64,000 nt of DNA, from positions 62,001 through 126,000 of the IMG/VR virus record IMGVR_UViG_3300037882_003354; one strand, 5' to 3'. Below the pieces are notes generated by a model. The model searched no databases, was not told the origin of the DNA, and saw only the letters and a list, made by a program, of their open reading frames with translations. Shown here one piece after another: positions 5,858 through 55,593 of this stretch; within the stretch, counting starts at the first letter, position 1, and every line of letters starts with the position of its first letter. A program made the position numbers and the translations under genes.

Positions 5858-6442
5858 CTATTTGCGCTGGATCATGCGCTTCTTGATTATTTTTACCACC
5901 TGTTCACTCAACACCACCTCGTAGTGGTTGTAATCCAGTTCGATCAATTCCATGTCATGCTCGTGGTGACGTTGACTGGCCACAGTGACCACCCCGTCAT
6001 TGGACTCGCGTATCCAGGCAGCATCACCCTTGGTGGTCACCACGTTACACCAGGGATGCTGTATTTTCATACGACTTGCCTGCTGCATGGGCCAACTTGA
6101 AGGACCAATGTCCCGTAACAGTCTGCTGAATGGCAGGAAATACTTGGCGTAATCTGCAATCTCAGCGCCACCATAAGGGGTGCTTAATGTCACAGCACCA
6201 CGTACCTGTTGTGGCATGGCATTGGCCAGGTGTAGAGAATATATACCACCCAGGCTATGTGCTACAAAAAATATGTCCTCAACATCATTCAGTGTTTTCT
6301 GCATGTCTCGGAGATTGTTTTCAAATCCGTTGGCGCTGTCATAATTCATCACCAGGTCCTGCCCACTCACCCGACCTCTAATGTAGTTGAAACTTTCACT
6401 AGTGGCCCGGGCACCATGAATATAAACCAAGGTCATGATCAA
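5858..6442 (-). CDS. alpha/beta-hydrolase (esterase/lipase-like)
   Basis: YIHG oxyanion motif, AHSLGG nucleophile elbow, TLSTPYGG, NDGVV, terminal NHYEV. Confidence 0.85.
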   Translation of the reverse strand: MIMTLVYIHGARATSESFNYIRGRVSGQDLVMNYDSANGFENNLRDMQKTLNDVEDIFFVAHSLGGIYSLHLANAMPQQVRGAVTLSTPYGGAEIADYAKYFLPFSRLLRDIGPSSWPMQQASRMKIQHPWCNVVTTKGDAAWIRESNDGVVTVASQRHHEHDMELIELDYNHYEVVLSEQVVKIIKKRMIQRK

Positions 6443-7434
6443 TGCCCAGTGGTTATGGGTTCGCTGCGTAAATATTTGGGATAACGCTTGTTAAAGTGAC
6501 GCATGACCACGCCCGCCAATTGATTGGCTTGATTTTCTTCTGGCGACCCAGTCTGCCCACTGTCCGGATTCAATTGATCCTTGATGTCCTGACGATAATG
6601 CACCAGCTCATGGGCAATGGTTCGTAGTATGTCGTTGGGGTGACGATTGATCAATGCCACATGCAACACCCGAGTGTCACTGTTATACTTGCCAAATGTC
6701 GGCTGTTCTTGGTCAGCTATACTGGTCTCAAAACGCATCTCAGGCAGGCTGTTTAATTCCAGATGGTGCATGGCCAAGGGTAGAAATTTAGAGAATACAT
6801 CCAGGAAATCGGCTTTGTGCTGCGTTAAATGCCCAACACCTTCACGTATGGCCTGTGTGGCTCCGCTAGGTCCCACATAATATGCCCTAAAGTCCACATC
6901 AGGGTACTCTACTTTCAGGCTCTTGAACACCCGGAGGTTGCTCATGCTGTCATCGTATAATCTCACGTGATCATATTTGCCAGTGTCCAGATATCTGCGT
7001 ACCCAGATGGCTTTCTTTTCTGCAGGGATGTCATCACCCGGCAGATTGCCGGCACGATGCACATGCACCTGGCTCATGTCAATGCCCAGGTCACTGAATG
7101 TCTTGAGGAACAAGTGTTTGTCATCAAAGTCTGCACGAGCAGTCAGCATGATGATTTCAGCATTAGCAGCATGAGCCATGATGGTGTTCAATTTGTTGAT
7201 CATGGGCTGTATGGGGCGACTCTCTTGATTGAACTTTTCAGCCGACCGAAACTCACCAAAGTCAAACTGTTCACCTGGTTCAAGTTCGTAACTGTTAAAC
7301 TCTTGATTGGTCAGTTCACGAGTCACCTGACCATCTTTGACCACCTTGATCCGGGCAGTGGTGTGCAGCAGGGTGTCATCTATGTCAAATATGACCAGAC
7401 TCTTTTTAGGCTGATTGAATTCTTTGGCTCTCAT
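6439..7434 (-). CDS. HAD-family phosphatase fused to HExxH metallopeptidase-like domain
   Basis: VIFDIDDTL (DxDxT), LTAR, LYDD motifs; C-terminal LRTIAHELVHYRQ...ENQA. Confidence 0.75.
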   Translation of the reverse strand: MRAKEFNQPKKSLVIFDIDDTLLHTTARIKVVKDGQVTRELTNQEFNSYELEPGEQFDFGEFRSAEKFNQESRPIQPMINKLNTIMAHAANAEIIMLTARADFDDKHLFLKTFSDLGIDMSQVHVHRAGNLPGDDIPAEKKAIWVRRYLDTGKYDHVRLYDDSMSNLRVFKSLKVEYPDVDFRAYYVGPSGATQAIREGVGHLTQHKADFLDVFSKFLPLAMHHLELNSLPEMRFETSIADQEQPTFGKYNSDTRVLHVALINRHPNDILRTIAHELVHYRQDIKDQLNPDSGQTGSPEENQANQLAGVVMRHFNKRYPKYLRSEPITTGH

Positions 7435-7624: not shown

Positions 7625-8443
7625 TCAATCAACTGCTGCATTTATGCCACATTGAGACTGTTTCGCTCGGGACAAGTCACCAAAGTTCACTGGCCATTCT
7701 TGGCCGGCATTCAGTTCCTTGACATCTACTGGAAATGCAAAATCCACACCAGACGATTTTTCAATTTGATCTATGGGCACGCGGAATTTTGTTAGATCCT
7801 TGCCCAGGTTGGGGTAAGGTTTGACATGCGGAAACTGCCAGGCTGCTGCTTGTCCAGTGGTGTTGTTGATCACTATCTTGTAAAAAGCATGGGGGACTGT
7901 CACAGCCTTGCCAATTTTTTTATCATTGCTGTTGTATAGACTGCCCACATGCACGGTATAACTCTGCCCAGTGGACACTGTCCAATCTCTGATGCTGGTT
8001 TCCAACAATTTCCATATGCCACGGTTCAGGGATGGAGCCTGCGGCGAAATATTGGTCATCAAGAAACTTTCAAATTCAACTTGGGCGTCCCAGGATAGAT
8101 CACCGCTAGGACTCATGTGACCCTTGTCGAACCCTGTGCCAACATAGTCGCTGGTCCTGGCTCCATTTTTAATGCTTTGATCTGCAGTAAACGTATTTGT
8201 GCGAATCACGCACCCCAATGCATTTTGGGATGTCAAATTATATGTGACATATCGGGGAATTTTGGCGGCAGCGTCATAGCCCACCAAGTATGCCTGACGG
8301 CAGATGGTGTGCACTCCTGAGGTCTGTGGAAAACCCCAGGGTGCATGTATTTTACATGTGACTAAATCTTGCGGTGGTCTTTGTGTCCAGGCCTGCACAA
8401 CTGTGGATGCACATAGTAATAATATCGCAAGTAATTTTTTCAT
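7625..8443 (-). CDS. DNA/RNA non-specific endonuclease (NucA/EndA family) with signal peptide
   Basis: MKKLLAILLLCASTVVQA signal; DKGHMSP, FLMTNISPQAPSLNRGIWKLLE, VPHAFYKIV motifs. Confidence 0.9.
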   Translation of the reverse strand: MKKLLAILLLCASTVVQAWTQRPPQDLVTCKIHAPWGFPQTSGVHTICRQAYLVGYDAAAKIPRYVTYNLTSQNALGCVIRTNTFTADQSIKNGARTSDYVGTGFDKGHMSPSGDLSWDAQVEFESFLMTNISPQAPSLNRGIWKLLETSIRDWTVSTGQSYTVHVGSLYNSNDKKIGKAVTVPHAFYKIVINNTTGQAAAWQFPHVKPYPNLGKDLTKFRVPIDQIEKSSGVDFAFPVDVKELNAGQEWPVNFGDLSRAKQSQCGINAAVD

Positions 8444-8478: not shown

Positions 8479-11400
8479 TCACCTTCGAACGAAATGATAG
8501 TCGCCGTCCGGCCCATTGTTACAAAATATGCCCATGCAATCAAACCCCTGTTGGTGCATGTATGCTATCACTGGCAGGGCCAGGGGCGCACCCTTGTTGT
8601 ATTCCACAACCTGCAGTTCCAGTATGACATGATTGACTGATTTCAATGTCTCTGTTGCACCACGCAGCACATCCAACTCAGCACCCTGTACATCCATTTT
8701 GATTAAATCTGGTGGCGGAAACCCTCTTTGAGATACTATGGAATCCAGAGTACATGCGGTGAGCATTCGACGTATACTTTCAGGATACAACTGATCGGCT
8801 GCCGGGCTGAGTTCTGAATTTTCCCTGTAGTAACTGTTACCACCTGGGTTTTCTGTATTCTCATAAAAGCCGATTTCCCTGCCGTCTTGATCACTCAGCA
8901 GACCAATGTTGTATGTCATTCCGGCTTCTTGGTACAAGAATTCGCTGGCTGACATGGCTTCAAATGCTATGTATTCTGCATCACCCCACACTCGTTTGGC
9001 GCAGTTGGTCCAGTGTAACACGCATGCACCTATGTCATATATGACCCGTGGTGCAACTTTTAGATTTTGCTGCATGTGCACCAGATAGTTATAGTGGTCA
9101 TTGGGCAGTAGAGACATAGTGCTCAACTCTCGAAGTCTCCGTTTGACTGGATCTTCTGCAACAGCGGCTGGGATGTTGTTGTCCACTTGAAATGTATGCG
9201 ATCCAATGTGTCGGCATTGAATACTGGTATCAGCCCAGATCCTGAATCCCTTGGCCAGTGCTTTGGCGCAGAAGTCTGTGTCCTCAGATATGGTGTGAGC
9301 ATGGTCGATGGCCGAGTGATATTTAAATTGTGGGTATTCGATGGCCCTGATGACATCTGTCTTGACCAGCACACAGCCAAATCCGCATCCGGCAATCTCC
9401 ACCAGGCCGCGACCTTTGATCTTTTCATATGGAATGTTGGTGACACCGCCGCGTCCATTGTGCTCATAGAGTTCCAGGGTGTGTTCACCAAACTTGCGTT
9501 GTATGTACAGTCCTGACACCATGTCACAGTCATGAGCCAGCATTTTCTTGAGCGTGTCTCGATCAAATGCTATGTCACTGTCTATGGAGAACAAATAGTC
9601 GTAATTCATGGACCAGTGTGCAATGAGATTGCGCACTTGATCAATGTTATATCCGTAGAAATATTGGAATTCCACTTGATATCCATCTGGCACTTCCATG
9701 TCGTAGATGGATTTAAATGTGTCCACCTCGATGTTCTTGGCAGTGGGTATGCCAATTAGAATACGTTTCTTGACCGCAGGTACGGGTACAACCATGGATT
9801 CCACCGGCCTAATCGAGAGTGCAGGCACAGTTGGTGTCACCACTGCACTGGTGGACTTTTCCAAAACTGTGAGTCCGTTGTTATGAACAGTATGATATTT
9901 AAAACGCCATTCTGGATGTTGGATCATGAACTCAATGATGGCCGGCAACAGTCCAGGGCTATCTATTGTGCCTGTTGCAAATGTAAAGGTGTCATGAAAT
10001 ACAATGTATTTGTTCACTTTATTGTGGTGTCTGGTCAGCTCAGCAGACAGTTGTTCATAAGAATGATCAGTGTCTATGAACAGCAAATCAGTGGGCTCAA
10101 TGAGTAGTGTTCGCGTGTCTGCCGCAGCATATGTACAGTCCTTGCCCAGCTGTCGAGCAACATCAAACAGTCGACCGACTGATTCAACTAGATATAGATC
10201 ATAAGATGTTAGTTTGCAATCACTCACCAACCAGGCCCTGGTTGACGAACCGTTTCTCACACCAAACTCAGTGACGGTCTTGCATTCGCCCGCCAGTTTT
10301 CTCAGTAGTGGCAAGTGTTGGTTGATGTCACTGGGCGATTGGCATTCCAATTGATATTCGTGTTCTAATATGTCCGTGTTGTTCATTTTAAGTTTTTCCT
10401 GTTCATATACAATTCTTTCTCGCTCTAAAAAGCCATCAGTGATGTCAGTATTGCCAGTGGTGGCGGCAAATGTGCCAGTGAATTTCATATTGGTTATGAA
10501 ATAATTTGTGCGTCCTTTTTTCAACTGTAAATCAAAGATAAAATTATCACCGTAATATATATTCAGCCCTGGGGGAATGTCCTGCCAGATGCTTCGGTGC
10601 AGAAACATCAGGCATCCAAACCCATAGGTATGCTGACCAGTCCAGGGCAGGATGTCAATGGCACCGTCAGTGATGGCTGGCTGATCAAAATCAGGTTCAC
10701 CGGGACACAGACCAAACACTCCGTTGGCTGGAGTCAGCAGATCTTCCAATCTGGAGAATACATCCAGATCGAAATACATGTCGTCGTTGACTATACAAAT
10801 CCTGTCATTACGAGCCACCTTGACACCCAGATTCCAGGCTGGGTTTACGTAGATGTTGAGCCCAAAGTCAAACATATGGATCTTGGCATGATCGGCCACA
10901 CCCACCGGTGTTCGGGTGGTGTCGTTGTTGATGATGATGACCTCATCAACAGCAGGGTGATCGCATAACCGGGCCAGGAAGGAGACAAACTCTGCAGGAC
11001 GGCGCCACATGGTGGGTACAATTACAGAATACTGTTTGACTGTGGATCGAGTGCTGATGATTCGAGCGTTGATGTTCTGCTCCTCTGCATTGACCTTGTA
11101 ATCGTTCAAGGGGTTGGCATCGTTGTAGTTGTACACCACATCCTGCAGACATTTGACCCGGTTGGGGTCAGCCGCCTCAATCAGTGCGTAGAACACAGCA
11201 CCGTCGCCACCGGCCTTGAACCATTGCCCTTGCGGATCCTGGAACAGGGCATCTGGCAGATCATTCACCAGATGCTTCTTGAAGGTTCTCAAGTGTGTGT
11301 AGGGCAAGATCCAGTTGAAGTGGTGATTTCTGTAATCACGATTTTGTTTGACTGCCTCGGGATACGGCTGACTGATCAAGGGTATGTTGTCCACCATGCT

Positions 11401-13101
11401 CCAGCAGGAGCCGTAGGTGAATTCAGTTGATCCGTCATAGATGGCATTGTAACGAGCGAATATTGAATTGTCGTTGACCAGTTTGTCATCACCATCCAAG
11501 AGCATGATGATGGCTTGATCATTTAATTTACGAATGGTGTCCATCTGATTTTTCACAGCACCCTGATTGACAGAGTTCCGGATCAGTGTAAACCGATCGC
11601 GTAGATCAGCTGGCAGGTCATCAATGGTCCTTGCAGCAACTTGATGTCCCTGGTCACTGGAACAGTCGTCAATCAAAATGTGCCGGTAGTTGGTGTAGTC
11701 CTGTGAGGCCACACTAAGGATGCAATCAGCGACATATGCTTGGCCATTGTAGAAGGGACTGACCACCACGATCTCTTGCTCGGTGTTGGCACGATGATCC
11801 TCAAATTCCACCTGATTGGTGAATCTGCGATTCCAGATTTTATGCACTCTGTGGTTGATCCTGCTGGCCCGACGATATTCCTCCACCGGCAGGTATGCGC
11901 CAGTCTTACGATAAATTATCTGCTTCCATTGCATGGCCACACTGTCCCAGCCGGCGATGTCTTTGACGATGTTACAGTAGTATTGTTTTTGTTGATGTAG
12001 GTATCGATCGTTGTAGGCTCTGACCACCATGTCCACAAACCGGTCCACTTGTTGCTGCTGATTGACGTTGGGATATAATCCGTTGGGTTCAATGGGGTAG
12101 TCTATATGATAGCAGGCACCATCCAGGGCTGTTTCTTCCATGGCACCAAACCTACAGGTGAGCACAGGTGTGTTATACAGCAGGCTTTCCAGGGTGGATA
12201 TGCCAAATGTTTCAGGGAACGCGGTGGGATAGATGGTAAAATTAGCCTGGGCTAGAATTTGCGCAATTTCTTTCTGTGGTATGACGCCAGTAAATTCCAG
12301 ACCACGGGCTGCATTGGTGGGATCGTTGGCCATGATCCTCCATCGTTTTTCCTGATCGTCAGGTTCACTGGCTGTGCTAAATCTGTAGTAGCCACCGATG
12401 ATTTTCAGTTGTGCTCGTGGTATGTGTTGCTTGACTCTGGGCCACACATGTTCAATCAGTGGAATCATGCCCTTGGTCACTGATGCATTGTATACGAACA
12501 GGTTGGGATCCTTGGCAGCAATGTCCACCTCGGGAATGTAATTTCTAACACCATTACGTGTACAGGTGATCCGGCGCTTGAGCACTTCAAACATGCGCTT
12601 GCCACCGTGATCGCAGGTGGCAACATAGGATGTATGCCAGTCACTTAATGTGAACACATCAGTGATTCGATCTGCCAGTGCCAAGGGTTCAATAAAGACA
12701 TCGCCCAGGCAGAATGTGTCATGCATCCAGAGTATACGCATCCGGGCTCGGCTCAGTATACGATCATACAGATTCATGTCCTTGAACTGCCAGGCTCTGT
12801 GATCTTGCAGTCGCTCAGTATTCTGTGGATCAATAAACGGAATCACAGTTCGTGAACTGATCACCACATCAAATTCATGATCCTGGTTAAGATCTTGCAA
12901 GGGACGATAGGTCACACCATCGTAGACACCAGGTCTAGCATGATCGATATCACAGTTGTTGAAAATGGTCACAGCAAAACCCAGCCGCTGCAACTCCAGG
13001 CCCATGAGTGTGACTGCACTCTCCGAACCACCCAGTCCCTGACGGAATACCGTGGTGCCGTCGTAGGGAATACCAATAATGTCAATAATAGCAAGTTTCA
13101 T
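8479..13101 (-). CDS. multidomain glycosyltransferase/methyltransferase polyprotein (GT-B + 3 GT-A + 2 SAM MTases)
   Basis: GLGGSES and ETFGISTLE (GT4-like); SPFYN..ILIDDCSSD..LDGDD and IVPT..VNDD (GT2-like); EFGVRNG..FIDTDH..FHDT (MTase); IGIPT..SIDSD..GFGCVL..SED (GT-A); YDIGA..IKMDVQGAE (FkbM-like). Confidence 0.85.
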   Translation of the reverse strand: MKLAIIDIIGIPYDGTTVFRQGLGGSESAVTLMGLELQRLGFAVTIFNNCDIDHARPGVYDGVTYRPLQDLNQDHEFDVVISSRTVIPFIDPQNTERLQDHRAWQFKDMNLYDRILSRARMRILWMHDTFCLGDVFIEPLALADRITDVFTLSDWHTSYVATCDHGGKRMFEVLKRRITCTRNGVRNYIPEVDIAAKDPNLFVYNASVTKGMIPLIEHVWPRVKQHIPRAQLKIIGGYYRFSTASEPDDQEKRWRIMANDPTNAARGLEFTGVIPQKEIAQILAQANFTIYPTAFPETFGISTLESLLYNTPVLTCRFGAMEETALDGACYHIDYPIEPNGLYPNVNQQQQVDRFVDMVVRAYNDRYLHQQKQYYCNIVKDIAGWDSVAMQWKQIIYRKTGAYLPVEEYRRASRINHRVHKIWNRRFTNQVEFEDHRANTEQEIVVVSPFYNGQAYVADCILSVASQDYTNYRHILIDDCSSDQGHQVAARTIDDLPADLRDRFTLIRNSVNQGAVKNQMDTIRKLNDQAIIMLLDGDDKLVNDNSIFARYNAIYDGSTEFTYGSCWSMVDNIPLISQPYPEAVKQNRDYRNHHFNWILPYTHLRTFKKHLVNDLPDALFQDPQGQWFKAGGDGAVFYALIEAADPNRVKCLQDVVYNYNDANPLNDYKVNAEEQNINARIISTRSTVKQYSVIVPTMWRRPAEFVSFLARLCDHPAVDEVIIINNDTTRTPVGVADHAKIHMFDFGLNIYVNPAWNLGVKVARNDRICIVNDDMYFDLDVFSRLEDLLTPANGVFGLCPGEPDFDQPAITDGAIDILPWTGQHTYGFGCLMFLHRSIWQDIPPGLNIYYGDNFIFDLQLKKGRTNYFITNMKFTGTFAATTGNTDITDGFLERERIVYEQEKLKMNNTDILEHEYQLECQSPSDINQHLPLLRKLAGECKTVTEFGVRNGSSTRAWLVSDCKLTSYDLYLVESVGRLFDVARQLGKDCTYAAADTRTLLIEPTDLLFIDTDHSYEQLSAELTRHHNKVNKYIVFHDTFTFATGTIDSPGLLPAIIEFMIQHPEWRFKYHTVHNNGLTVLEKSTSAVVTPTVPALSIRPVESMVVPVPAVKKRILIGIPTAKNIEVDTFKSIYDMEVPDGYQVEFQYFYGYNIDQVRNLIAHWSMNYDYLFSIDSDIAFDRDTLKKMLAHDCDMVSGLYIQRKFGEHTLELYEHNGRGGVTNIPYEKIKGRGLVEIAGCGFGCVLVKTDVIRAIEYPQFKYHSAIDHAHTISEDTDFCAKALAKGFRIWADTSIQCRHIGSHTFQVDNNIPAAVAEDPVKRRLRELSTMSLLPNDHYNYLVHMQQNLKVAPRVIYDIGACVLHWTNCAKRVWGDAEYIAFEAMSASEFLYQEAGMTYNIGLLSDQDGREIGFYENTENPGGNSYYRENSELSPAADQLYPESIRRMLTACTLDSIVSQRGFPPPDLIKMDVQGAELDVLRGATETLKSVNHVILELQVVEYNKGAPLALPVIAYMHQQGFDCMGIFCNNGPDGDYHFVRR

Positions 13102-13136
13102 GCTATTAATTATACATTACTGGCCCCCAGTGTCAA
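13102..13136 (-). promoter_or_regulatory. consensus sigma70 promoter of the GT polyprotein gene (leaderless)
   Basis: TTGACA(13131-13136)-16 nt-TATAAT(13109-13114), 7 nt before ATG at 13101, no SD. Confidence 0.75.
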
Positions 13137-21668: not shown

Positions 21669-22289
21669 TTAGAATCCGTTGGTGTTTGAGTTGTAAAATA
21701 CCAGACCAGTCACGTTGGTGGTTTTGGCAATGGTGGGCGTTTGATAGTTGAATTCTAAGAAATCTTCTCCATCGAGTTCACCAAACTGAATCCTTACGGG
21801 ATAATACTGGCCAGCAGTCAGTGCAATACTGCCGCTGACTTCGTTAGCGCCGTGTGCGCCGCCGTTGTTGATTAGTGCATTGCCTGCGTCAAATCCTGTG
21901 ACAGCATTGGGACCAATCCACATGTAACTGGCATCATCGCTGTTGAGGAAGAATGTGTGAGTCTGAGTGGTGGTGGGTTTGAAGTAGCCCAACCATTGCA
22001 CACTGAAATTGCCGCCGTCAGAATAGTCAGTATCACCATCATTAGGTCCATTATTTTGTTCGAAAATATCTGTGGTTTGCACAGATGTGGCTGGGTTTGA
22101 ACCGAATCCCTGTGGGGTGGCACCGGCAAAAAAATTCACATTATCGTCGAAATATCCTGCATAAGTGGTTTTGAACAATCCTGCGACATAGACGGCAGTG
22201 GCTGCGACGGCTGGCAGGCGTGGTCGTCGACTGGCCAGGGGGCTTTGGTTCACTGCACCAGCACTTGTCCTGCCTATGCGATTCCACAT
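21669..22289 (-). CDS. virion protein with PA14 domain
   Basis: Start moved to MWNRIG at 22289; FSVQWLGYFKP..T.TFFLNSDDASYMWIG...GQYYPVRIQFGE is the PA14 pattern. Confidence 0.8.
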   Translation of the reverse strand: MWNRIGRTSAGAVNQSPLASRRPRLPAVAATAVYVAGLFKTTYAGYFDDNVNFFAGATPQGFGSNPATSVQTTDIFEQNNGPNDGDTDYSDGGNFSVQWLGYFKPTTTQTHTFFLNSDDASYMWIGPNAVTGFDAGNALINNGGAHGANEVSGSIALTAGQYYPVRIQFGELDGEDFLEFNYQTPTIAKTTNVTGLVFYNSNTNGF

Positions 22290-22290
22290 G

Positions 22291-22593
22291 TTAGGAGTTG
22301 GGCAGTTCCATGACACTCATCAGACCCGAGGTGCTGGCTGTGCGGCCGGCCACCTGTTCCAGTCCCTCCACCGCGTAATATTCTGTGGTGCCTGCTGTCA
22401 ACAACACAGAAGCGGTGGTGGCGGTGCTCACGGCTCCGGGACTGCCAATGTTCAGGTAGGTGTCTTGTGTGACTGCCACACGTATGATGCCGGTCTGGCT
22501 GTTGAGTGCCAGTGTGGCTGTGCTGGTGGCACTGGTCACTGAGAGATTTTGAACTGTGCCAATCCTGGGGGCACCTTTTCTTAAATATGTCAT
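22291..22593 (-). CDS. small beta-rich virion protein
   Basis: 100 aa, late promoter CTAAATA 22615-22621, AAGGA SD. Confidence 0.65.
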   Translation of the reverse strand: MTYLRKGAPRIGTVQNLSVTSATSTATLALNSQTGIIRVAVTQDTYLNIGSPGAVSTATTASVLLTAGTTEYYAVEGLEQVAGRTASTSGLMSVMELPNS

Positions 22594-22885: not shown

Positions 22886-23668
22886 TTATGTCTTGATGTA
22901 ATTTAATAGTATGCTGTGATCACGGTGATCAGGGTGCCAGTCTGGGCGCATGAATTCCAGCACGGCACAGGTGACTGTCCAGAACACACCACATTGACGG
23001 TCAAACAACACGGCAACTGCATCCTTGAGTGTGCGCCATTTCCACAACTGGCCATCTGATCGCAGGAATATCACGGTGTTTTTCATCACATGGTACATGT
23101 AACACACGTAAACCAACAACATGACCCATCTTCTGTGATTGACACCGCCATCCACCAGTTGCCATACGTTCATGGCCACTGACTTGTGCTCGATTTCTTC
23201 CACGGCGTGCCAGCGCCAGATGGTTTCAAAATGTGGATGCATGCGGCGCAGAGCAGTTCTGTATCTCAGCAGGTATTCTGCATTGACTGCTGTCATGTGC
23301 TCAATGCACACAGTGGCGGTCAAACACACGCGATCGCTCCAACGTGTGCGTAGATGGGACCAAAATTTGTGCTGTCGCTGGGCCGCAGCCTGTGCCGGTA
23401 ATCCCTGCTGCTCCAGCCATTGTGTGTACTGTGCATGCACATGACCGTGCCAATTTTCCTGTTTGACAAAGGTATTGAAATCCACCAACTGCGCAGGATC
23501 TGTCACAGCGTGCCGATAGGCCTTGAGTGAATCTATGAAGAATCGTTCCCCGTCAGGAAAGTTTATATTCAGGGAATTCAACCAGTGTGTTTTGAATGGG
23601 CTGCCATCATTCCAATAATATGGAAGTTCTTGATCCCAATCTAATTTCAGTGGCTGTGACGTAAACAT
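22886..23668 (-). CDS. ferritin-like di-iron protein ('predicted metal-dependent hydrolase' family)
   Basis: FPDGERFFIDS, QENWHGHVH, IEHMTA, WHAVEEIEHKSVA: E / ExxH / E / ExxH ligand pattern. Confidence 0.8.
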   Translation of the reverse strand: MFTSQPLKLDWDQELPYYWNDGSPFKTHWLNSLNINFPDGERFFIDSLKAYRHAVTDPAQLVDFNTFVKQENWHGHVHAQYTQWLEQQGLPAQAAAQRQHKFWSHLRTRWSDRVCLTATVCIEHMTAVNAEYLLRYRTALRRMHPHFETIWRWHAVEEIEHKSVAMNVWQLVDGGVNHRRWVMLLVYVCYMYHVMKNTVIFLRSDGQLWKWRTLKDAVAVLFDRQCGVFWTVTCAVLEFMRPDWHPDHRDHSILLNYIKT

Positions 23669-23678: not shown

Positions 23679-24446
23679 TCATGGATTATTCACTGATGTG
23701 ATGATCCAGAAATCTGAACTCATGCTGGTATTCTGCACCACTTGGTAGGGCATGTAGAAGTAACCGCGGTCACCCCAGCCGGTGCCCCAGGAATTTCTTG
23801 CTATGAATTGCTGAGTGCTGTCTCGATAACCCACCAGGGCCACCGCATGTCCCCCCAGCAACCGTTCTGTTTGAACATTGGGGTAGGGCATTTGTCCTGT
23901 ACGTGCCACCGCCAGGGTTTGAAAACTTGAATACACATTGAATCCCATGACCACAGGGTATCCCTGCGCCAGGGCTGTCTTGACTCCATCAAAGTCGGTT
24001 ATGCGACGATAGGCACCCACTCGTCGTTTGAGAGCGTCTTTGTATGCTGCCGCGCTGGGCTTGATGGCGAACCTGCCAATGATATAAGGCCACAGGCTTT
24101 CCAAGGGTGCACCAAATTTGTTCACAGCCTTGATGCCGTCTCGCAGGTAGGCGCCACTGTCATAGTTCACTGTGCCGTACAGCAACCGCTCCTGGTAATA
24201 GATGAACAGTCGGCTGACGTCCAGATTCTTCTTGGCTTTACGATTGAGGTATTCAACTAGTCCAGCAATGGCCTGGCCAGTGCATGATCCCAACTGCCCT
24301 TGGTTTTCTATGGGGCTGCATCCCGGTCTTAAATCCACCAGCGCAGGTAATGCCAATTGCGGTGCAGCATACAAGTAATCCCTGGCATCTGGTGGATCTG
24401 GACGCCAGTGTAATCGGGGTATGGTTATATTAGTTGGACGTGGCAT
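23679..24446 (-). CDS. papain-like (C1A) cysteine protease
   Basis: QGQLGSCTG, GGHAVALVGY, RNSWG catalytic motifs; start moved to 24446 (AGGA SD). Confidence 0.9.
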   Translation of the reverse strand: MPRPTNITIPRLHWRPDPPDARDYLYAAPQLALPALVDLRPGCSPIENQGQLGSCTGQAIAGLVEYLNRKAKKNLDVSRLFIYYQERLLYGTVNYDSGAYLRDGIKAVNKFGAPLESLWPYIIGRFAIKPSAAAYKDALKRRVGAYRRITDFDGVKTALAQGYPVVMGFNVYSSFQTLAVARTGQMPYPNVQTERLLGGHAVALVGYRDSTQQFIARNSWGTGWGDRGYFYMPYQVVQNTSMSSDFWIITSVNNP

Positions 24447-24505
24447 GTGTTTTTTCCTGGGTTGACTGTGCAAAAATCATTATAAGATTGTGAATAAGAT
24501 TTACG

Positions 24506-36400: not shown

Positions 36401-37573
36401 TGTGCCGCCAGCATTGCCCATTGTATCTGTCGCTGTTATGGTTATACTTTCACCTGGAACAAAACCACCTGGGTGATCTGTTGATAAAGCAAATGTTCCC
36501 ACAGTGGGACGAATGACCAGACTCTGTCCTGCCAGTGCACCCGGAGGTGTTAGCACCATGGTGGTGGTCGTTTCAGCTATGGTGCCGCCTTGTGGAAGAG
36601 TTAATGTGCCGGTTGATCCCAGTACCACGCTGTAACTTCCAGTGGTCAATCTGTCAACTGCCACCGGATTGCCGTTTATATACAGCCCAGTATTATCAAC
36701 ACGCATGCGCTCACAGGCACCAGCGCCAATTAACACAGTGCATGCGCAGCCGGGGGCAGCTGGCAGACTGCCAATGATGGTGTTGCTAATTCCGGTGGTC
36801 AACAGACATCCTGCACTGGCACCAATGCCAATGTTACCGCCATAGCCACCATACGAATTTGCGCGCATCAGAGCCGAGTTGCCTATGGCCACGTTGTTGT
36901 TGCCAGAGATATTGGCGCACAGGGCTACATTACCCAATGCTATGTTGTTGCTGCCATTGCAGGTGTTGGCCAGTGAACGACATCCAATGGCAATGTTATT
37001 ATTTCCGTAACCATATCCGGCTTCTGAATCTCCAGTGCGTTGCAATCGATAGGCGGAGCATTGTCCAATGGACACATTGTTGTCATTGCCATAGTTATTG
37101 CAAAATTGTGACCTATGACCCAATGCAACATTGTTGCAGCCAGACCTATTGTTGACCAATGACTGACATCCCACAGCAATGTTGTTGCTACCGTCGTCGT
37201 TAAAACTTAATGATTGATAACCGATGGCGGTATTGTTGCAACCATATCCATTGCTGTAGAGCGCACATTTACCCTGTGCAAAGTTGTTGGACCCTATGCT
37301 ATTGGTGAAGAGTGCCTGTGTGCCCAGGGCTGTATTACTACAACCGCTGGCGTTGCCGTATAATGCCTGGAAGCCCACGGCCACGTTATCTTTACTGTTG
37401 CCATTGGCCGAAAGCCCACCGCCTCCCAGAAATAAACTGCAACGTGCATCAAAAGTCACGTTGCCCACGCTGCCGGTGTATCCAGTGAGGTCAAAATATC
37501 TTTGAACTCGATATGCTGTGATCAAGTCTTCACGTGAAAAGTCGTCGCTGTTTATTCCGTTGGCTGTTGGCAT
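33407..37573 (-). CDS. long modular tail fibre (Cys-rich YadA-like repeats, WTFG.DG.LT(F/L)P repeats, PA14 domain)
   Basis: 1388 aa; internal DNA-level duplications; WELTGYFRAP..GTYTF..SADD (PA14); ends GVWYINGTGLT. Confidence 0.8.
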   Translation of the reverse strand: MPTANGINSDDFSREDLITAYRVQRYFDLTGYTGSVGNVTFDARCSLFLGGGGLSANGNSKDNVAVGFQALYGNASGCSNTALGTQALFTNSIGSNNFAQGKCALYSNGYGCNNTAIGYQSLSFNDDGSNNIAVGCQSLVNNRSGCNNVALGHRSQFCNNYGNDNNVSIGQCSAYRLQRTGDSEAGYGYGNNNIAIGCRSLANTCNGSNNIALGNVALCANISGNNNVAIGNSALMRANSYGGYGGNIGIGASAGCLLTTGISNTIIGSLPAAPGCACTVLIGAGACERMRVDNTGLYINGNPVAVDRLTTGSYSVVLGSTGTLTLPQGGTIAETTTTMVLTPPGALAGQSLVIRPTVGTFALSTDHPGGFVPGESITITATDTMGNAGGTLDYEFTGATTQQLGTGTTGTLVIEATSTTTSLTWTIPALSSMTTFTFALTTATGFGGTSGLPIDITVTLDGSAVSENNHIHLLSGDPVTVDLYLGDDNQYVKIEKNGGDVVIATSTNTNHWTFATDGALTLPQGGVINETLGAETLTLVGAGLAAVNQTYINTSPTLYTGSNGVTIEEISPGVWFIVQGLDAKYISTDDLITWSNGTGGLPVPTSTVNTGVNTVNVIVGTETWTFGTDGGLTFPDLTVQSSAYTGMLPPVNGDGTSGNAWMTFYADDAWQSTSKVTINPASGMLTLSGTNGAGGITFPNSGVLDVGLQLGTTSGLTRNIYSEYVGGYALPLPTYGELSSSMATWTADITDIVNPIYWTGISEQTWELTGYFRAPEAGTYTFNVSADDYYFIIIDGDISPVPEINTPAVVVLTQGQIVSYKVLYANIAGSGTLDLQWKNNVSQPTYTSDFGGLVATNTGGTVDLTVNSKAWTFGGDGTTTLPTVLWNYVPTTFSNIEVGYGETQLTFTVQPDGTISDAIVTLGVGGYGPPDGTINLSVPGTTFPGGTGDGTGIGNDITFNFALDSAGATITGTIPTYVSGTPPARYDNISSTGNMGLGSGSSHWTFGTTGTITLPQGSTIGETTTTTVISPPGAVAGQSLVIRPTADPVNTETNHIHLLSGDPVTVDLYLGDDDQYVKIEKNHGNVVIGTNTTTNTNTNHWTFGTTGTITFPDSTVQTTAYTGATSTSTLVNGTSTLSLSSTGTITFPDSTVQTTAWTNTGTTSTFVMSNTTSSTSTATGALVVTGGVGIGGNLYVGGEIVAQKLTIELTTVTTTLIQTDDIIQTTNTTAATSTNTGALTVAGGVGVGGGMFVGGTVTAASITAQASAATTASTAASVGYMGLPQNATGTTTLTMSDAGKHIYVTTAGQTITIPAAASVAYPIGTTITFIAGASATTVLIAITTDTLRLAGGTSTGTRTLAANGMATAVKVSGTSSSGVWYINGTGLT

Positions 37574-45093: not shown

Positions 45094-46407
45094 TTATAGT
45101 TTGTCGCCGGCGGAAAATCCCCTAAACCGCTCAAATCGTGGAAACCTTAAACTATATACAGATTCAGAATCTTGACTCTGCGTAATACAATCTGCCTTAA
45201 CCTCAATCACTTGTCCAATAACATTTTCCCGATCGCTCCAGATTTCATCTCGTTGTTCATCAGTGAGACCAGATCCTACGTTTACCCGGATAAATTTATC
45301 TTGATCAATACCTTCACAAATTAAAGCACCTAACTTGCCTGCATTTTTCCCAGTACCTTCTTCTAAATTAATGATAGTTAAGTCAACAGTAAGCACTGGT
45401 TTAACCTTTAACCAGGATACGCTGCGTTTAAACGAATATGATGCTGATGGATCTTTAATTAGAATGCCTTCAAATCCTGACTGAATGGCATCCAGATTGA
45501 ATTGCCGGAATTCCAGTTCACCCACACATGTGCCCAGATCCACTTCCTGTTGCGGCACCATGTCCATGTGACCCACCGCTTCAAAGATGGGCAGCATGTT
45601 CCGGAGTGCCTGACTGCGGCGTGCTTGTGATTGTGAACTGAATCCGCGCTGGAATTCCGGCAGTGGCAACAGGTCGAACAACATGAGACGAGCATCGTCA
45701 CTCTTGACGTTACTCTTGCGGTGTACTTGTTTCATCAAGGCCTGGAAACTACTGGACACCATCTCACCATCCAGTACCACGCTGGACTTGAACAAGTCCA
45801 TGTTGGCTTCAATGGCTTCGGTGATGTGCGGAAAGTTTTCCAGGATCTTGCCGTTACGGCTATACATGGTGGCGGTTCGGTTGTCCACGTTGACCACTGT
45901 GATGACGCGCACACCATCCAGTTTGATCTCCAACAACTTTTTACCCGCAATCTTCTTTTCATGGTTAGCACCGTCGTGGGCCAGCATGCACTCAAATAGT
46001 GGCACAGCATAGTCGGCCCGTCCTGCCAGTTTGACCATCTTGTTCACAGTGGTCTCACTGAAGCCGGCTCGCATGTCCTTGATCAGTATGCGACGATACC
46101 AGCCGTTCCATTGTGCCGCGGTGCTGGCCGACAGTGCCAGTTCGATGGCATCACGGGCATCATGTCCCGTGAATTCTCGTTGTGACAATGCACGGGCCAG
46201 TTCGGCAAATGCCACCCAGGGCAATCCCTGTCCATCTGGACCAGTGAACGTGGGCACCTTCTTGACACCGAATGTGATCATGGGATCGAAGCAAAGTCGT
46301 AGACCCTGAAAGAATTCAGTGTTACCTGCCTCGGCTTCACGACGTACAATGGCCTCTTTGAACAGACGACTGTTGTCAGATTCAAGTTCTTGGATAATTT
46401 CATGCAT
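45094..46407 (-). CDS. lig: ATP-dependent DNA ligase
   Basis: EIKLDGVR (KxDG), LDGEM, FDLL, EGILIK, WLKVK, LRFPRF motifs. Confidence 0.95.
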   Translation of the reverse strand: MHEIIQELESDNSRLFKEAIVRREAEAGNTEFFQGLRLCFDPMITFGVKKVPTFTGPDGQGLPWVAFAELARALSQREFTGHDARDAIELALSASTAAQWNGWYRRILIKDMRAGFSETTVNKMVKLAGRADYAVPLFECMLAHDGANHEKKIAGKKLLEIKLDGVRVITVVNVDNRTATMYSRNGKILENFPHITEAIEANMDLFKSSVVLDGEMVSSSFQALMKQVHRKSNVKSDDARLMLFDLLPLPEFQRGFSSQSQARRSQALRNMLPIFEAVGHMDMVPQQEVDLGTCVGELEFRQFNLDAIQSGFEGILIKDPSASYSFKRSVSWLKVKPVLTVDLTIINLEEGTGKNAGKLGALICEGIDQDKFIRVNVGSGLTDEQRDEIWSDRENVIGQVIEVKADCITQSQDSESVYSLRFPRFERFRGFSAGDKL

Positions 46408-50917: not shown

Positions 50918-50946
50918 TTGACAATGCATGCTGATCACTGTATAAT
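50918..50946 (+). promoter_or_regulatory. consensus sigma70 promoter
   Basis: TTGACA-17-TATAAT. Confidence 0.8.
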
Positions 50947-50981
50947 AAAGACTGCACAACAACACTGGAAAGACCAACATC

Positions 50982-51125
50982 ATGTACACATTTGAAGTCT
51001 GGGTTCGCCTGAACACCTATCAAACCACACGAGTTCGCATTCAAGCTGACAACGGCAATGATTGCCGTCTGATCGCCGAGGCCCAATACGGCCAGGGCAA
51101 TGTTTTAGACTACCGGCATGTGTGA
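50982..51125 (+). CDS. 47-aa hypothetical protein
   Basis: Below ORF-track cutoff; MYTFEVWVRLNTYQTT...AQYGQGNVLDYRHV; follows promoter, stop overlaps next ATG. Confidence 0.7.
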   Translation: MYTFEVWVRLNTYQTTRVRIQADNGNDCRLIAEAQYGQGNVLDYRHV

Positions 51126-51892
51126 TGGCCAAACAAAAACAAAAACGACTGGGCATAATTCAATCGCGTGGACTGGGTGACATTGTCATCTCCCTGCCCA
51201 TAGCTCATTACTATCATGAGCAGGGCTGGCACGTGCACTGGCCCATCATGGAGCAGTGGGTGCAGCAGATGCAGGAGGCCGCGCCCTGGGTCAAATGGAT
51301 TCCAGTGGCCCAGGATTCAGGTGCCTTCTTCTATGATGTGCCCTTGGAGCGTCTGCAGAACTTCAAGTGTGACGAGATCCTGTGCCTGTATCAGGCCCTG
51401 TCAGGTCATCCGGAGTTCACTCAGGAGCCCTGGTTCCAGCACACCAATTTTGATCAGTACAAGTACATACGTGCTGGAGTGCCATTCATGAACAAATGGC
51501 GTCTGGCTGATTGTATAACCAGAAATCCTGCACGAGAGCAAGCACTACATGATCGCCTGGTCACACAGCATGATTATGTGGTGGTTCATTTGACCGGCAG
51601 CAATCACACTGCGGCATTTGACACTGCCATGATACCTGAAGACTGGCAGGTGATCGAGATTCAGGATCAGGCTGAATCCATCTGGGATTGGCTGGGAGTG
51701 CTGTCAGGTGCTCAGAGCATCGTGTGCGTGGACAGTGTGTTCAGCAACCTGGTGGACCAACTGGGTCTGGGAGAAGACCGATACTTCATTCCCCGCAGCC
51801 ACATACAACTGACCCCCACCCTGGGTCAGGCGTGGACCTGGTTACACAATGCCCGACTGGATCCTGCCGTGCGTATATTTGGAAGCAAATAA
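51125..51892 (+). CDS. GT-B glycosyltransferase (GT9-like)
   Basis: Start moved to 51125 (TGATG); QSRGLGDIVISLP and IVCVDSVFSNL motifs. Confidence 0.7.
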   Translation: MAKQKQKRLGIIQSRGLGDIVISLPIAHYYHEQGWHVHWPIMEQWVQQMQEAAPWVKWIPVAQDSGAFFYDVPLERLQNFKCDEILCLYQALSGHPEFTQEPWFQHTNFDQYKYIRAGVPFMNKWRLADCITRNPAREQALHDRLVTQHDYVVVHLTGSNHTAAFDTAMIPEDWQVIEIQDQAESIWDWLGVLSGAQSIVCVDSVFSNLVDQLGLGEDRYFIPRSHIQLTPTLGQAWTWLHNARLDPAVRIFGSK

Positions 51893-51922
51893 AAATCCAC
51901 TACAGCCAGTCACTGGCATGTT

Positions 51923-52549: not shown

Positions 52550-52659
52550 GTTGTATTTCCTTGGTTAAAAAAATATTTATTAGCTGGCAAAACCGGCTGC
52601 TGTTAAACTGGATCTAGCACTGCCTACACTTTGAAGGTGTTGCCATGGGTGGTTTCCTG

Positions 52660-53739: not shown

Positions 53740-53754
53740 GTGTGGTTCTCCCTG

Positions 53755-54864: not shown

Positions 54865-54867
54865 GAG

Positions 54868-55203
54868 TTACACCCGAGTCAGTGCCGCAAGTGCCTGTGA
54901 TTCAGTGACGTCCAGATCATAGTTGCGGGCCAGGAATCGGGCGAACAGAGCCTGACGACCCGGTGAGTATTTGAGTTGTTCACGATAGGCTTCTACCTCA
55001 TACTCAAATCGTCGGGTCCGAGACAGCCAGTAGGGTATGCCAAAAAGTCCGAAACTACGCCAAAATTGTCGGACATGTACCAATTCGTGTTGTAATAGTC
55101 CCACATCATCTCGACAGCGTGGTCTAATGAGCACCAAGGGTCCCAGTGTGTAACCACTGAATCGGTCAGGCATGAGGTCGGTGTATATGATCAGGTGTAG
55201 CAT
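54868..55203 (-). CDS. small HExxH-motif protein
   Basis: LLQHELVHVRQ...EYEVEAY. Confidence 0.7.
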   Translation of the reverse strand: MLHLIIYTDLMPDRFSGYTLGPLVLIRPRCRDDVGLLQHELVHVRQFWRSFGLFGIPYWLSRTRRFEYEVEAYREQLKYSPGRQALFARFLARNYDLDVTESQALAALTRV

Positions 55204-55240
55204 GTGATGAGTCCTTTTAAAGGTTAAAGGTGGTGCAAGA

Positions 55241-55564: not shown

Positions 55565-55593
55565 GCGGTCACTCCAGGTTTATATGTATATAT

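Follow-up and report, generated by a model that had tools for sequence, protein, structure and literature searches.

In order to characterize the locus, we examined a window of 64,000 nucleotides (the whole stretch of DNA analysed, positions 62,001 to 126,000 of IMG/VR record IMGVR_UViG_3300037882_003354), in which a single intact ORF of 1540 aa with an ATG start occupies positions 8479..13101 on the minus strand. Only 5 in-frame codons are open upstream of the start (open frame 1545 aa), such that no longer N-terminus is possible. The encoded 176-kDa protein has a pI of 5.5 and no predicted transmembrane segment (highest Kyte–Doolittle 19-mer 1.59), and is thus predicted to be soluble. A sequence-only reading had described this ORF as a fusion of GT-B, GT-A, GT-A, methyltransferase, GT-A and FkbM-like methyltransferase domains, and we were able to confirm that observation, with all six domains present in the order given. 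Both AlphaFold2 models were confident (pLDDT 90–92; 89.7 for the model that includes the first domain), and in an alignment set of more than 100 homologues each domain retained invariant catalytic or cofactor motifs.

The first domain (D1, aa 1–430; 11812..13101, minus strand) is a GT4-like, retaining-type glycosyltransferase, scoring 35.4 and 40.7 bits against the Pfam models Glycos_transf_1 and Glyco_trans_1_4 (cut-offs 26.4 and 27), with E297 and E305 of the E-x7-E motif in its C-terminal half being invariant in 76 sequences. Its predicted two-Rossmann-domain GT-B fold matches sucrose-phosphate synthase at Z 28.8, BshA, PimA, WaaG and PglA at Z 26–28 over about 320 residues, and ManT at Z 25.5. 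The second domain (D2, aa 431–690; 11032..11811, minus strand) is a GT2 glycosyltransferase of predicted GT-A fold (Glycos_transf_2, PF00535, 57.1 bits) with an invariant D536-G-D538-D539 (DxD) motif; it matches TarS, SpsA, WrtF and CgT at Z 18–19.5, and TarS also by sequence. The third (D3, aa 691–900; 10402..11031, minus strand) is an accessory GT2-like GT-A module, absent from many homologues, which scores 27.3 bits against a Glycos_transf_2 cut-off of 23.3 and carries invariant N772-D773-D774, D778 and D852. A profile search of D3 against PDB sequences returned no relative, and a profile comparison of D3 with D5 gave a probability of only 0.6 %, so the two are not close paralogues.

The fourth domain (D4, aa 901–1095; 9817..10401, minus strand) is an accessory, class I, cation-dependent-type (CCoAOMT-like) O-methyltransferase by predicted fold, with matches to 8c9v (Z 17.6), MeT1 (Z 16.8) and the rhamnosyl O-methyltransferase SpnH (Z 15.8) over about 165 residues; by sequence, the excised domain scores 25.6 bits against Methyltransf_24, for which the cut-off is 26.3. 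Its SAM motif E945-x-G947..G951, together with D968, D1010 and D1037, is invariant in the 13 aligned sequences that carry D4; H1036 belongs to the same set of motif residues, and a disordered linker follows at aa 1087–1106. The fifth domain (D5, aa 1096–1320; 9142..9816, minus strand) falls below the Pfam GT2 cut-off (15.5 bits against 23.3) and we therefore assigned it instead to the A197-like family of viral GT-A proteins: it hits phrog_1574 at 2.6e-23, its family profile hits A197 of STIV (PDB 2c0n) at 1.1e-7, and the predicted fold matches A197 at Z 20.9 (rmsd 2.1 over 167 residues). D1174-S-D1176, E1273-D1274 and H1298 are invariant. The sixth domain (D6, aa 1321–1540; 8482..9141, minus strand, with the stop codon at 8479–8481) is an FkbM-family SAM-dependent methyltransferase (Methyltransf_21, PF05050, 65.9 bits against 22.7) with an invariant D1356-x-G1358 motif, 40 % identity to the Moumouvirus FkbM protein with a TM of 0.93, and a weak sequence match to the FkbM structure 2py6. 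None of the six domains is a recent copy of the other glycosyltransferase and methyltransferase genes of the phage, the best match being that of D5 to two stand-alone paralogues at 28–29 % identity.

Promoter and genomic neighbourhood

Immediately upstream of the gene, at 13109..13136 on the minus strand, we found a consensus sigma-70 promoter (TTGACA, 16 nt, TATAAT; 12 of 12 positions), as the sequence-only reading had proposed. The genome contains 25 such perfect sites, against about 0.1 expected. The −10 hexamer ends 7 nt before the ATG and no Shine–Dalgarno sequence is present; the predicted transcription start, inferred from sequence alone, falls at the CA of C-ATG and would give a leaderless mRNA. 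A matching promoter was found in 51 of 64 related loci, in most of them 5–11 nt before the ATG, which implies early, leaderless or near-leaderless expression. In contrast, the T4 late-promoter motif TATAAATA is not enriched in the genome (12 sites against about 10 expected), and so provided no demonstration of late timing for the neighbouring genes. In metatranscriptome run X20 only six short contigs lay inside the gene, at 95–100 % identity; carry-over of DNA cannot be excluded for these, and their 5′ ends are not informative.

On the 5′ side of the gene, the products of genes between 13151 and 42405 contain 18–26 % Ser+Thr, compared with about 10 % in the glycosyltransferase gene and the non-structural neighbours, and several hit tail-fibre, tail-spike or virion PHROGs. 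The 3′ side, however, is not structural at first, as a nuclease, a polynucleotide-kinase-like gene and a hydrolase precede the next virion gene at 976–2790. The nuclease gene (7625..8443, minus strand; phrog_14168, 2e-40) begins 35 nt downstream on the same strand with no terminator-like site in the gap, and is probably co-transcribed, although this is inferred. It encodes a non-specific nuclease (Endonuclease_NS in a 94 %-identical relative) and is the conserved 3′ neighbour of the gene in relatives, with synteny in more than 20 loci. The adjacent fibre genes, on the other hand, are not conserved even in the 94 %-identical relative; what is conserved is the position at the border of a hypervariable fibre/adhesin region, which was seen in two different genomic contexts.

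The phage and its other glycan genes

The phage has a complete genome of 322,512 bp with direct terminal repeats, derived from lake metagenomes, and is abundant in lake viromes such as runs X1 and X2. Its major capsid protein is a member of the Gp23 family (PF07068, 271.6 bits), with 68–71 % identity to those of XaC1, CBB, GAP32, Vibrio phage 2.275.O and Phosso. As such, the description of the phage as T4-like is correct only broadly, and it is better placed among the T4-related Rak2/GAP32-like jumbo phages. The capsid gene lies outside the window; an 858-aa ORF with a weak 'major head protein' PHROG hit had no relative among the phage records searched. We also considered the 'moraphages' (PMC12619734) and the Bacteroidetes bS21 phages (PMC9723584; GC 31–34 %, bS21 inside the capsid module) as the lineage, but rejected both, as this phage has about 48 % GC, a Gp23 capsid protein close to that of Rak2-like phages, Shine–Dalgarno-led early genes and sigma-70 consensus promoters. 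No psbA was found in the genome, so a cyanobacterial host is not indicated.

The dedicated glycan machinery of the phage is much larger than had been seen from the window alone. Three further sets of glycan genes are present, comprising a GT9 heptosyltransferase-like gene, sulfotransferases, a carbamoyltransferase, ADP-heptose epimerase-like genes and a membrane GT2 synthase; cytidylyltransferase-like, HIGH-type nucleotidyltransferase, HAD phosphatase, cupin, O-methyltransferase and several glycosyltransferase genes were also identified. No hit to the NTP_transferase family was obtained.

A large family with exchangeable modules

A nucleotide search of the gene against 50,697 phage records gave no match, whilst the protein search of these records returned only domain-sized hits, mostly to D5 in cyanomyoviruses, so that no cultured phage among them carries a full-length copy. 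The protein belongs to a large, undescribed family of at least 1188 protein clusters (at 90 % identity) and at least 571 IMG/VR loci, and is not an oddity of this genome. The same uninterrupted ORF occurs in many independent assemblies, with up to 94 % identity over the full length. The family is essentially phage-only, as just 2 of 185,579 species genomes contain a relative, both of them metagenome-assembled (Cellvibrionaceae and Luminiphilus), which suggests Gammaproteobacteria as candidate hosts.

The family core is D1-D2-D5-D6, and the six-domain form is a minority architecture among the best-scoring homologues. D3, D4 and extra copies of D1 or D6 come and go like cassettes: on a 127-sequence tree of the shared domains, 25 architecture changes are needed, and D4 needs 10 changes for 14 carriers. 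In one relative (P0003), which is about 90 % identical in D1 and D2, D4 is affected by a clean cassette indel. Stand-alone relatives of D5 also exist, and in a Methanobacteriales virus such a gene sits inside the portal-to-tail structural module.

Discussion

The sequence-only reading inferred that the gene, probably expressed before late proteins, builds a methylated oligosaccharide on virion proteins, or alternatively on the host surface or phage DNA; our findings support this interpretation only in part. All six domains look catalytically competent, and hence a multistep methylated glycan product is the natural and well-supported reading, with the conserved promoter and the proposed analogy to chlorovirus A064R (as an analogy; PMC7826918, PMC9614988) also holding. 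The acceptor remains unresolved by these data, whilst the DNA alternative is weakened.

We favour a model in which the gene encodes a soluble, cytoplasmic assembly line, where four glycosyltransferase modules (one GT-B/GT4, two GT2 and one A197-like GT-A) would add sugars one after another and two SAM-dependent O-methyltransferase modules (one of the cation-dependent type, one FkbM) would then methylate the product, a short oligosaccharide. In this view the gene is transcribed early by host sigma-70 RNA polymerase from the promoter abutting its start codon, so that the enzyme would be in place before late proteins appear. The family core would make a methyl-capped product on the scale of a trisaccharide, and gain, loss and exchange of D3 (a sugar) and D4 (a methyl group) between closely related phages would diversify the glycan. 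The most likely acceptors are the Ser/Thr-rich fibres and other virion proteins encoded beside the gene, which would be glycosylated in the cytoplasm as in chloroviruses and mycobacteriophages. Of these elements, the domain set, motif conservation, predicted solubility, promoter conservation and module turnover rest directly on the analysis, whilst the enzyme activities, their order of action, the donor sugars, the early timing and, least certain of all, the acceptor are inferences.

We place the probability of this model, with a virion acceptor, at about 0.45. In its favour are the position at the border of the fibre region, module turnover resembling that of surface antigens, the near-restriction of the family to phages, the structural context of the stand-alone D5 relative, and the homology of D5 to a GT-A protein of STIV, a virus reported to have a glycosylated capsid protein. 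Against it, there is no direct evidence of a glycan on any virion protein; the conserved neighbours are a nuclease and a polynucleotide-kinase-like gene rather than structural genes; Ser/Thr richness is ordinary for phage fibres; an early promoter suits host takeover or DNA modification at least as well; the best structural neighbours of D1 (PimA, WaaG and BshA) act on lipids or small molecules and not on proteins; and published opinion on similar jumbo-phage glycan clusters favours modification of the host surface (PMC7824862).

The strongest alternative, although less likely, is that the enzyme builds a methyl-capped glycan on a host lipid-linked intermediate (LPS core, O-antigen or capsule precursor) at the cytoplasmic face of the membrane, which would be exported by host machinery, altering the surface of the infected cell early in infection and thereby blocking superinfection or masking receptors. 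The sigma-70 promoter would fit this, as would the resemblance of D1 to the peripheral-membrane GT4 enzymes WaaG and PimA and of D2 to TarS, TarP and WrtF. Methyl capping recalls chain termination in ABC-transporter-dependent O-antigen synthesis, the genome holds ADP-heptose-epimerase-like, cytidylyltransferase-like and GT9 heptosyltransferase-like genes and a membrane GT2 synthase, and module polymorphism fits a surface antigen. Additionally, the epimerase and D5 are closest to cyanomyovirus genes, and such clusters were proposed to diversify outer polysaccharides against competing phages (PMC7824862). In disagreement with this, however, no initiating polyprenyl-phosphate transferase, flippase, polymerase or ABC permease is encoded, no predicted protein in the 322.5-kb genome having more than 4 TM-like segments, although host-supplied partners cannot be excluded. 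The enzyme itself has no membrane anchor, the family is almost absent from bacterial genomes, which is unexpected for an enzyme grafted onto a host pathway, and a lytic T4-type cycle leaves little time for surface turnover.

It is rather unlikely that the product is a free cytoplasmic methylated oligo- or polysaccharide, akin to the mycobacterial methylmannose polysaccharides, or a glycosylated small molecule or secondary metabolite. D1 does match the methylmannose-polysaccharide mannosyltransferase ManT, D4 matches MeT1 of the same pathway as well as SpnH, and the genome holds carbamoyltransferase, sulfotransferase and cupin genes of the kind seen in metabolite clusters (PMC7824862). Nevertheless, these are generic fold matches among many others, a benefit to a lytic phage is not obvious, and the position beside fibre genes and the surface-antigen-like module turnover would go unexplained.

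The probability that the enzyme extends and methylates a sugar on a modified base of phage DNA, in the manner of the T4 alpha- and beta-glucosyltransferases, protecting the genome from the putatively co-transcribed nuclease and from host restriction, is lower still. The promoter is of an early type, as for the T4 glucosyltransferase genes, the conserved immediate 3′ neighbours are a non-specific endonuclease and a polynucleotide-kinase-like gene, and the fold of D1 also matches T4 alpha-glucosyltransferase (Z 20.7) and the glycosyltransferase chain of phage HY126 (Z 23.1), which carries arabinosylated 5-hydroxycytosine DNA (PMC13326640). However, about 30 ordinary GT4 enzymes match D1 better than these do, the only thymidylate-synthase-family gene in the genome is a canonical ThyA (355 bits against the equivalog cut-off of 327), and searches of the genome found no ThyX and no C5 DNA methyltransferase; a search for Tet/JBP was likewise negative, albeit with a silent control. 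A four-sugar, doubly methylated DNA adduct would also be without precedent. Finally, an assembly or gene-calling artefact, or a decaying fusion with dead domains, is contradicted by the recurrence of the intact ORF in independent assemblies, the invariant motifs in every domain and the confidence of both models.

A more far-reaching possibility, which we regard as less likely than not, is that uncultivated freshwater and marine jumbo phages carry glycan 'serotypes' of their own, with a single early, leaderless-translated megaenzyme, its sugar and methyl modules swapped between near-identical phages, coating virion fibres or another exposed structure with strain-specific methylated oligosaccharides, backed up by further heptose, sulfate and carbamoyl tailoring genes. 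Were this so, it would constitute a virus-encoded glycosylation system in tailed phages comparable in scope to that of giant viruses.

Virus-encoded glycosylation is established for chloroviruses and mimiviruses and, recently, for mycobacteriophages, whereas in tailed phages of Gram-negative hosts glycosyltransferases are usually read as DNA-modifying or serotype-converting enzymes. The protein described here stands for an abundant, phage-restricted family in which module content changes between close relatives, pointing to strong diversifying pressure on a putative phage-made glycan. As one predicted soluble polypeptide carries the whole inferred pathway, the question of what phages glycosylate, and with what, becomes directly accessible through its expression. 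The modules are also candidate parts for glyco-engineering, and the conserved, promoter-abutting start codon provides a clean natural test case for leaderless early translation in a T4-related phage.

Comparison with known systems

The toolkit found elsewhere in this genome (an epimerase, a HIGH-type nucleotidyltransferase, a HAD phosphatase, a carbamoyltransferase, O-methyltransferases and several glycosyltransferases) is that of the glycan gene clusters of jumbo cyanomyoviruses (Iyer et al., 2021; PMC7824862), where, however, these are separate genes, and the fused megaenzyme has no full-length counterpart in any of the 50,697 phage records searched. The DNA glycosyltransferases of T4 and of phages such as HY126 share the GT-B fold, and early expression in a T4-related phage would be a further parallel, but they are single-domain enzymes that depend on a hydroxylated or hydroxymethylated pyrimidine pathway, which was not found in this genome. 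Bacterial multidomain O-antigen or S-layer glycan enzymes with methyl capping (WbdA/WbdD, WbbB and WsaE) are likewise soluble or peripheral multi-glycosyltransferase proteins combined with a terminal methyltransferase; these act on undecaprenyl-linked acceptors inside loci that also hold transporters, partners that the phage lacks.

The glycosyltransferases of mycobacteriophage virion glycosylation (Freeman et al., 2023, cited in PMC12619734) also lie among structural genes, with a proposed logic of cytoplasmic glycosylation of virion proteins, although they are separate single-domain genes in small siphoviruses whose virion glycans were shown by experiment, whilst here there is one fused enzyme with an early-type promoter and computational evidence alone. 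STIV A197 is a true homologue of D5, both being viral, with a minimal GT-A fold and a DxD motif, but it is a stand-alone protein of about 200 aa in an archaeal virus, whereas D5 is fused between two methyltransferases. A064R (two rhamnosyltransferase domains plus a methyltransferase) and A111/114R (three glycosyltransferase domains) of chlorovirus PBCV-1 are virus-encoded, soluble, multi-transferase fusions, A064R extending a glycan and methylating it and being described as one of the few enzymes with three transferase domains (PMC9614988, PMC7826918). No A064R chain was present among the 50 best structural matches of either model or in the sequence searches. The present protein, with four glycosyltransferase and two methyltransferase domains, has twice the transferase domains that made A064R notable; it is encoded by a tailed phage, its domain families, which include GT4 and A197-like members, appear to differ, and its family shows a turnover of cassettes that is not described for A064R.

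Domain organization and predicted structure

In order to establish the coding content of the locus we examined the reading frame at window positions 8479..13101 on the minus strand, which proved to be a single ORF of 1540 aa beginning with ATG. As only five in-frame codons are open upstream of this ATG (open frame 1545 aa), the start cannot lie further upstream. The whole protein and six excised pieces were then scanned against Pfam and PHROGs. D1 (aa 1-430) matched Glycos_transf_1 / Glyco_trans_1_4 above the cut-offs, D2 (aa 431-690) matched Glycos_transf_2 at 57 bits and D3 (aa 691-900) matched the same family at 27.3 bits against a cut-off of 23.3. D4 (aa 901-1095) scored 25.6 bits with Methyltransf_24, just under the cut-off of 26.3, whilst D5 (aa 1096-1320) gave only weak GT2 and GT21 hits, but matched phrog_1574 at 2.6e-23. 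Finally, D6 (aa 1321-1540) matched the FkbM family Methyltransf_21 at 65.9 bits. The domain order is that listed in the sequence-only reading, and this observation is therefore confirmed.

To validate these assignments we built two AlphaFold2 models on family alignments, both of which were confident: residues 1-900 gave pLDDT 89.7 and pTM 0.75, and residues 901-1540 gave pLDDT 91.5, with one disordered linker at aa 1087-1106. A structural search of the models against the whole PDB settled the two weak domains. The best match of D5 was the STIV glycosyltransferase A197 (Z 20.9, rmsd 2.1), which a D5 family profile also recovered by sequence (E 1.1e-7), whilst D4 matched cation-dependent O-methyltransferases, among them the sugar methyltransferases MeT1 and SpnH (Z 16-17.6). 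D1 is a GT4-like GT-B domain (Z 28.8 to sucrose-phosphate synthase, followed by BshA, PimA and WaaG), and D2 resembles TarS, SpsA and WrtF.

We next asked whether the domains are likely to be functional. In alignments of 25-76 homologues (13 of them carrying D4) the expected catalytic or cofactor residues were invariant: E297-x7-E305 in D1; D536-G-D538-D539 in D2; N772-D773-D774, D778 and D852 in D3; E945-x-G947..G951, D968, D1010 and D1037 in D4; D1174-S-D1176, E1273-D1274 and H1298 in D5; and D1356-x-G1358 in D6. The protein has no transmembrane-like segment, its highest 19-residue Kyte-Doolittle mean being 1.59, and its pI is 5.5. As such, it is best read, from sequence and predicted structure, as a soluble cytoplasmic enzyme with four active glycosyltransferase sites and two active methyltransferase sites.

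A conserved promoter abutting the start codon

A sigma-70 consensus matching at 12 of 12 positions (TTGACA, 16 nt, TATAAT) lies at 13136..13109, followed by TAATAGC and then the ATG, with no Shine-Dalgarno sequence. The whole genome holds 25 such perfect sites against about 0.1 expected, and most of these lie in one plus-strand block of small genes at 112.9-135.5 kb of the complete genome record (hereafter G000), so that they behave as the early promoters of the phage. Within this dense block of perfect or near-perfect promoters (window 50918-64000, plus strand, continuing to G000 135.5 kb), most sites are followed 6-7 nt after the -10 hexamer by CATG, the ATG of which is in frame with a Shine-Dalgarno-led ATG about 24 nt downstream; early genes may therefore use both leaderless and SD-dependent initiation. 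A tRNA-Leu gene (anticodon UAA) also lies in the early region, at window 57146-57229 on the plus strand.

In 51 of 64 related loci with enough upstream sequence, a matching promoter precedes the same conserved N-terminus (MK[LI]AIIDIIG...), and in most of them it is TTGAC[A/T/C]-16-TATAAT placed 7, 9 or 11 nt before the ATG. With the usual spacing, transcription would start at the CA of C-ATG, which would give a leaderless mRNA here and a 2-4-nt leader in the variants, although this is inferred from sequence alone. The nuclease gene located 35 nt downstream (window 7625-8443, minus strand) has no terminator-like site before it and is probably co-transcribed.

The phage genome

The window corresponds to bases 62001-126000 of a complete 322,512-bp IMG/VR virus record with direct terminal repeats. 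Its major capsid protein is a member of the Gp23 family that is 68-71% identical to those of Xanthomonas XaC1, Pectobacterium CBB, Cronobacter GAP32, Vibrio phage 2.275.O and Sinorhizobium Phosso. Thus, it is a Rak2-like, T4-related jumbo phage rather than a classical T4-like phage, which corrects the T4-like label of the sequence-only reading. The runs that hold the gene are lake and freshwater metagenomes. Consensus sigma-70 promoters and AGGAG-type ribosome-binding sites in the early genes argue for a proteobacterial rather than a Bacteroidetes host. Although the phage encodes a ribosomal protein bS21 homologue (G000 37144-37296, minus strand; 41 bits), its context and the GC content of the genome differ from those of the Bacteroidetes-infecting bS21 phages (PMC9723584). 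Only two of 185,579 species genomes carry a relative of the gene, and both are gammaproteobacterial metagenome-assembled genomes: a Cellvibrionaceae genome, on a contig of 201,532 bp, and a Luminiphilus genome. The 201-kb contig is probably a binned phage and may hint at the host range of marine relatives. An ATP-dependent DNA ligase gene (phrog_114, 4e-91) is present at window 45094-46407 on the minus strand.

A large and modular protein family

No cultured or deposited phage among the 50,697 records searched has a full-length relative. In metagenomes, however, the protein has at least 1188 homologous clusters at 90% identity and at least 571 IMG/VR loci, some of which lie on contigs of 339-393 kb, and UniProt holds unnamed members from 'uncultured Caudovirales phage'. 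To explore the architecture of the family we mapped the six domains onto 131 homologues. D1-D2-D3-D5-D6 was found in 61, the core D1-D2-D5-D6 in 26 and a duplicated D1 in 23, whilst all six domains were present in five, plus the protein of the window itself. D4 occurred without D3 in four and with D3 in swapped order in one, D6 was duplicated in two and missing in five, and the other four entries were gene fragments or one odd arrangement with an extra D3 at the C-terminus. As these counts come from the best-scoring hits to a six-domain query, the proportions are biased.

A relative about 90% identical in D1 and D2 (P0003) lacks exactly residues 925-1091, with conserved flanks on both sides. 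On a FastTree of the shared D1+D2+D5 regions of 127 proteins, D3 presence needs 11 changes (shuffled labels average 38.6), whereas D4 presence needs 10 changes for 14 carriers (shuffled 13.5) and is therefore almost uncoupled from the backbone. D1 duplication needs two changes, and all architectures together need 25 changes (the minimum possible is 10; shuffled 61). Modules are therefore gained, lost or exchanged often.

Genomic context

The 3' side of the gene is conserved in many loci, where the glycosyltransferase gene is followed by the nuclease, a polynucleotide-kinase-like gene and, further on, a virion protein. In the window the conserved downstream trio consists of the non-specific nuclease at 7625-8443, a polynucleotide-kinase-like protein with a C-terminal extension at 6439-7434 and an alpha/beta hydrolase at 5858-6442, all on the minus strand, and the same order is seen in many related loci. 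In contrast, the 5' side is hypervariable and holds fibre or adhesin-like genes. In the window these are Ser/Thr-rich fibres (18-26% S+T against about 10%), and three further minus-strand genes lie inside the fibre block: a PA14/GLEYA lectin-like protein (21669-22316), a PF10118 metal-dependent hydrolase (22886-23668; 221 bits) and a peptidase (23679-24473; phrog_16701). In a 94%-identical relative, the PA14/GLEYA protein is the immediate upstream neighbour of the glycosyltransferase gene, and in another six-domain relative the 5' side holds a 2161-aa Laminin_G_3 fibre, the gene there sitting beside NUDIX, gp15, gp13 and sheath genes. The gene thus keeps a place at the edge of the variable fibre region, but is not tied to any one fibre gene.

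Additional glycan genes in the genome

The genome encodes several further sets of genes of this type. A small sugar-nucleotide cassette on the minus strand (segment L093 7029-9151, G000 about 143.0-145.2 kb) sits among replication genes (helicase, primase, UvsW-like and RecA-like genes) and holds an ADP-glyceromanno-heptose-6-epimerase-like gene (251 bits against a cut-off of 274.6) next to cytidylyltransferase-like and cupin genes at 143.6-145.2 kb. The epimerase is closest to cyanomyovirus epimerases, at 42-49% identity. A tight minus-strand island (segment L094 1809-10460, G000 about 171.8-180.5 kb) holds an APS-kinase-like gene, a GT2, a sulfotransferase, a GT1, a HAD phosphatase, a D5 paralogue (an A197-like GT-A), a second sulfotransferase, a carbamoyltransferase and a GT9 heptosyltransferase-like gene. 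It lies directly downstream of two tail-fibre genes with endosialidase-chaperone (Peptidase_S74) domains, and a 10-of-12 promoter-like site sits in the 68-nt gap.

A third island, on the plus strand at about 307.3-314.7 kb (segment L095 1102-8651, G000 about 307.1-314.7 kb), starts with a perfect sigma-70 promoter and holds a Methyltransf_24 O-methyltransferase, a metallophosphoesterase, a PP-loop ATPase, a GT1, a dCMP deaminase, GTP cyclohydrolase I (FolE) and another D5 paralogue, again an A197-like GT-A. The presence of FolE plus a PP-loop enzyme could hint at a 7-deazaguanine-type or folate pathway. Furthermore, a 408-aa GT2 protein at G000 319489-320715 on the plus strand (Glycos_transf_2 104 bits, Glyco_trans_2_3 68 bits) has three TM-like segments; it looks like a membrane-embedded synthase-type glycosyltransferase and could extrude a polysaccharide from the infected cell. 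Counting the six-domain enzyme, this comes to at least 11 glycosyltransferase domains.

Proposed function and comparison with known systems

The enzyme-level reading is well supported by these findings: a soluble enzyme, expressed early, whose core builds a short glycan with a methyl group and whose cassettes add a further sugar (D3) and a further methyl group (D4). The domain set, the residue conservation, the recurrence of the promoter and the turnover of modules are results of the sequence and structure analyses, whereas catalysis, the early timing, the leaderless start and, above all, the acceptor are inferred. The interpretation offered in the sequence-only reading, a methylated oligosaccharide placed on virion proteins or alternatively on the host surface or phage DNA, is only partly supported. 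Our preferred but tentative reading is that the acceptors are virion proteins, to which, for the statement as a whole, we assign a probability of about 0.45. In favour of this are the position of the gene beside fibre genes in different genomic contexts, and the consideration that a soluble cytoplasmic enzyme needs no export machinery to reach virion proteins. Additionally, a stand-alone D5 relative sits inside a structural module, the solved homologue A197 is viral, the module turnover resembles that of surface antigens, the family is essentially restricted to phages, and there are chlorovirus and mycobacteriophage precedents.

Remodelling of the host envelope is the next most likely reading. 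It is favoured by the inferred early expression, the resemblance of D1 and D2 to LPS and teichoic-acid enzymes, the heptose genes and the published interpretation of similar clusters in jumbo cyanophages (PMC7824862); in disagreement with it, however, no initiating transferase, flippase, polymerase or permease was found in the phage. A soluble methylated glycan or glycoside is unlikely, as it rests only on generic fold matches. DNA modification is the least likely of the alternative functions: the early timing and the nuclease and kinase neighbours point towards it, but the genome has a canonical ThyA and no ThyX or C5 methyltransferase, whilst a Tet/JBP search also found nothing, albeit with a silent control. 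An artefact is excluded by the many independent full-length copies.

A search of the literature returned no paper that describes this family. Virus-encoded enzymes combining several transferases have precedents, and what sets the present protein apart is a fusion of six transferase domains that is cassette-variable, phage-restricted and preceded by a conserved, predicted leaderless early promoter. For phage glycobiology we consider its interest to be high, within the limits set by an acceptor that is inferred without experimental evidence. The closest functional analogue is PBCV-1 A064R (GT-GT-MT), together with A111/114R, to which no specific homology was detected, A064R being absent from the sequence hits and from the 50 best structural matches of either model. 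D5 is homologous to STIV A197, whilst D6 is 40% identical to a Moumouvirus FkbM protein, and beyond its own family the nearest viral structures are multi-GT proteins of giant viruses.
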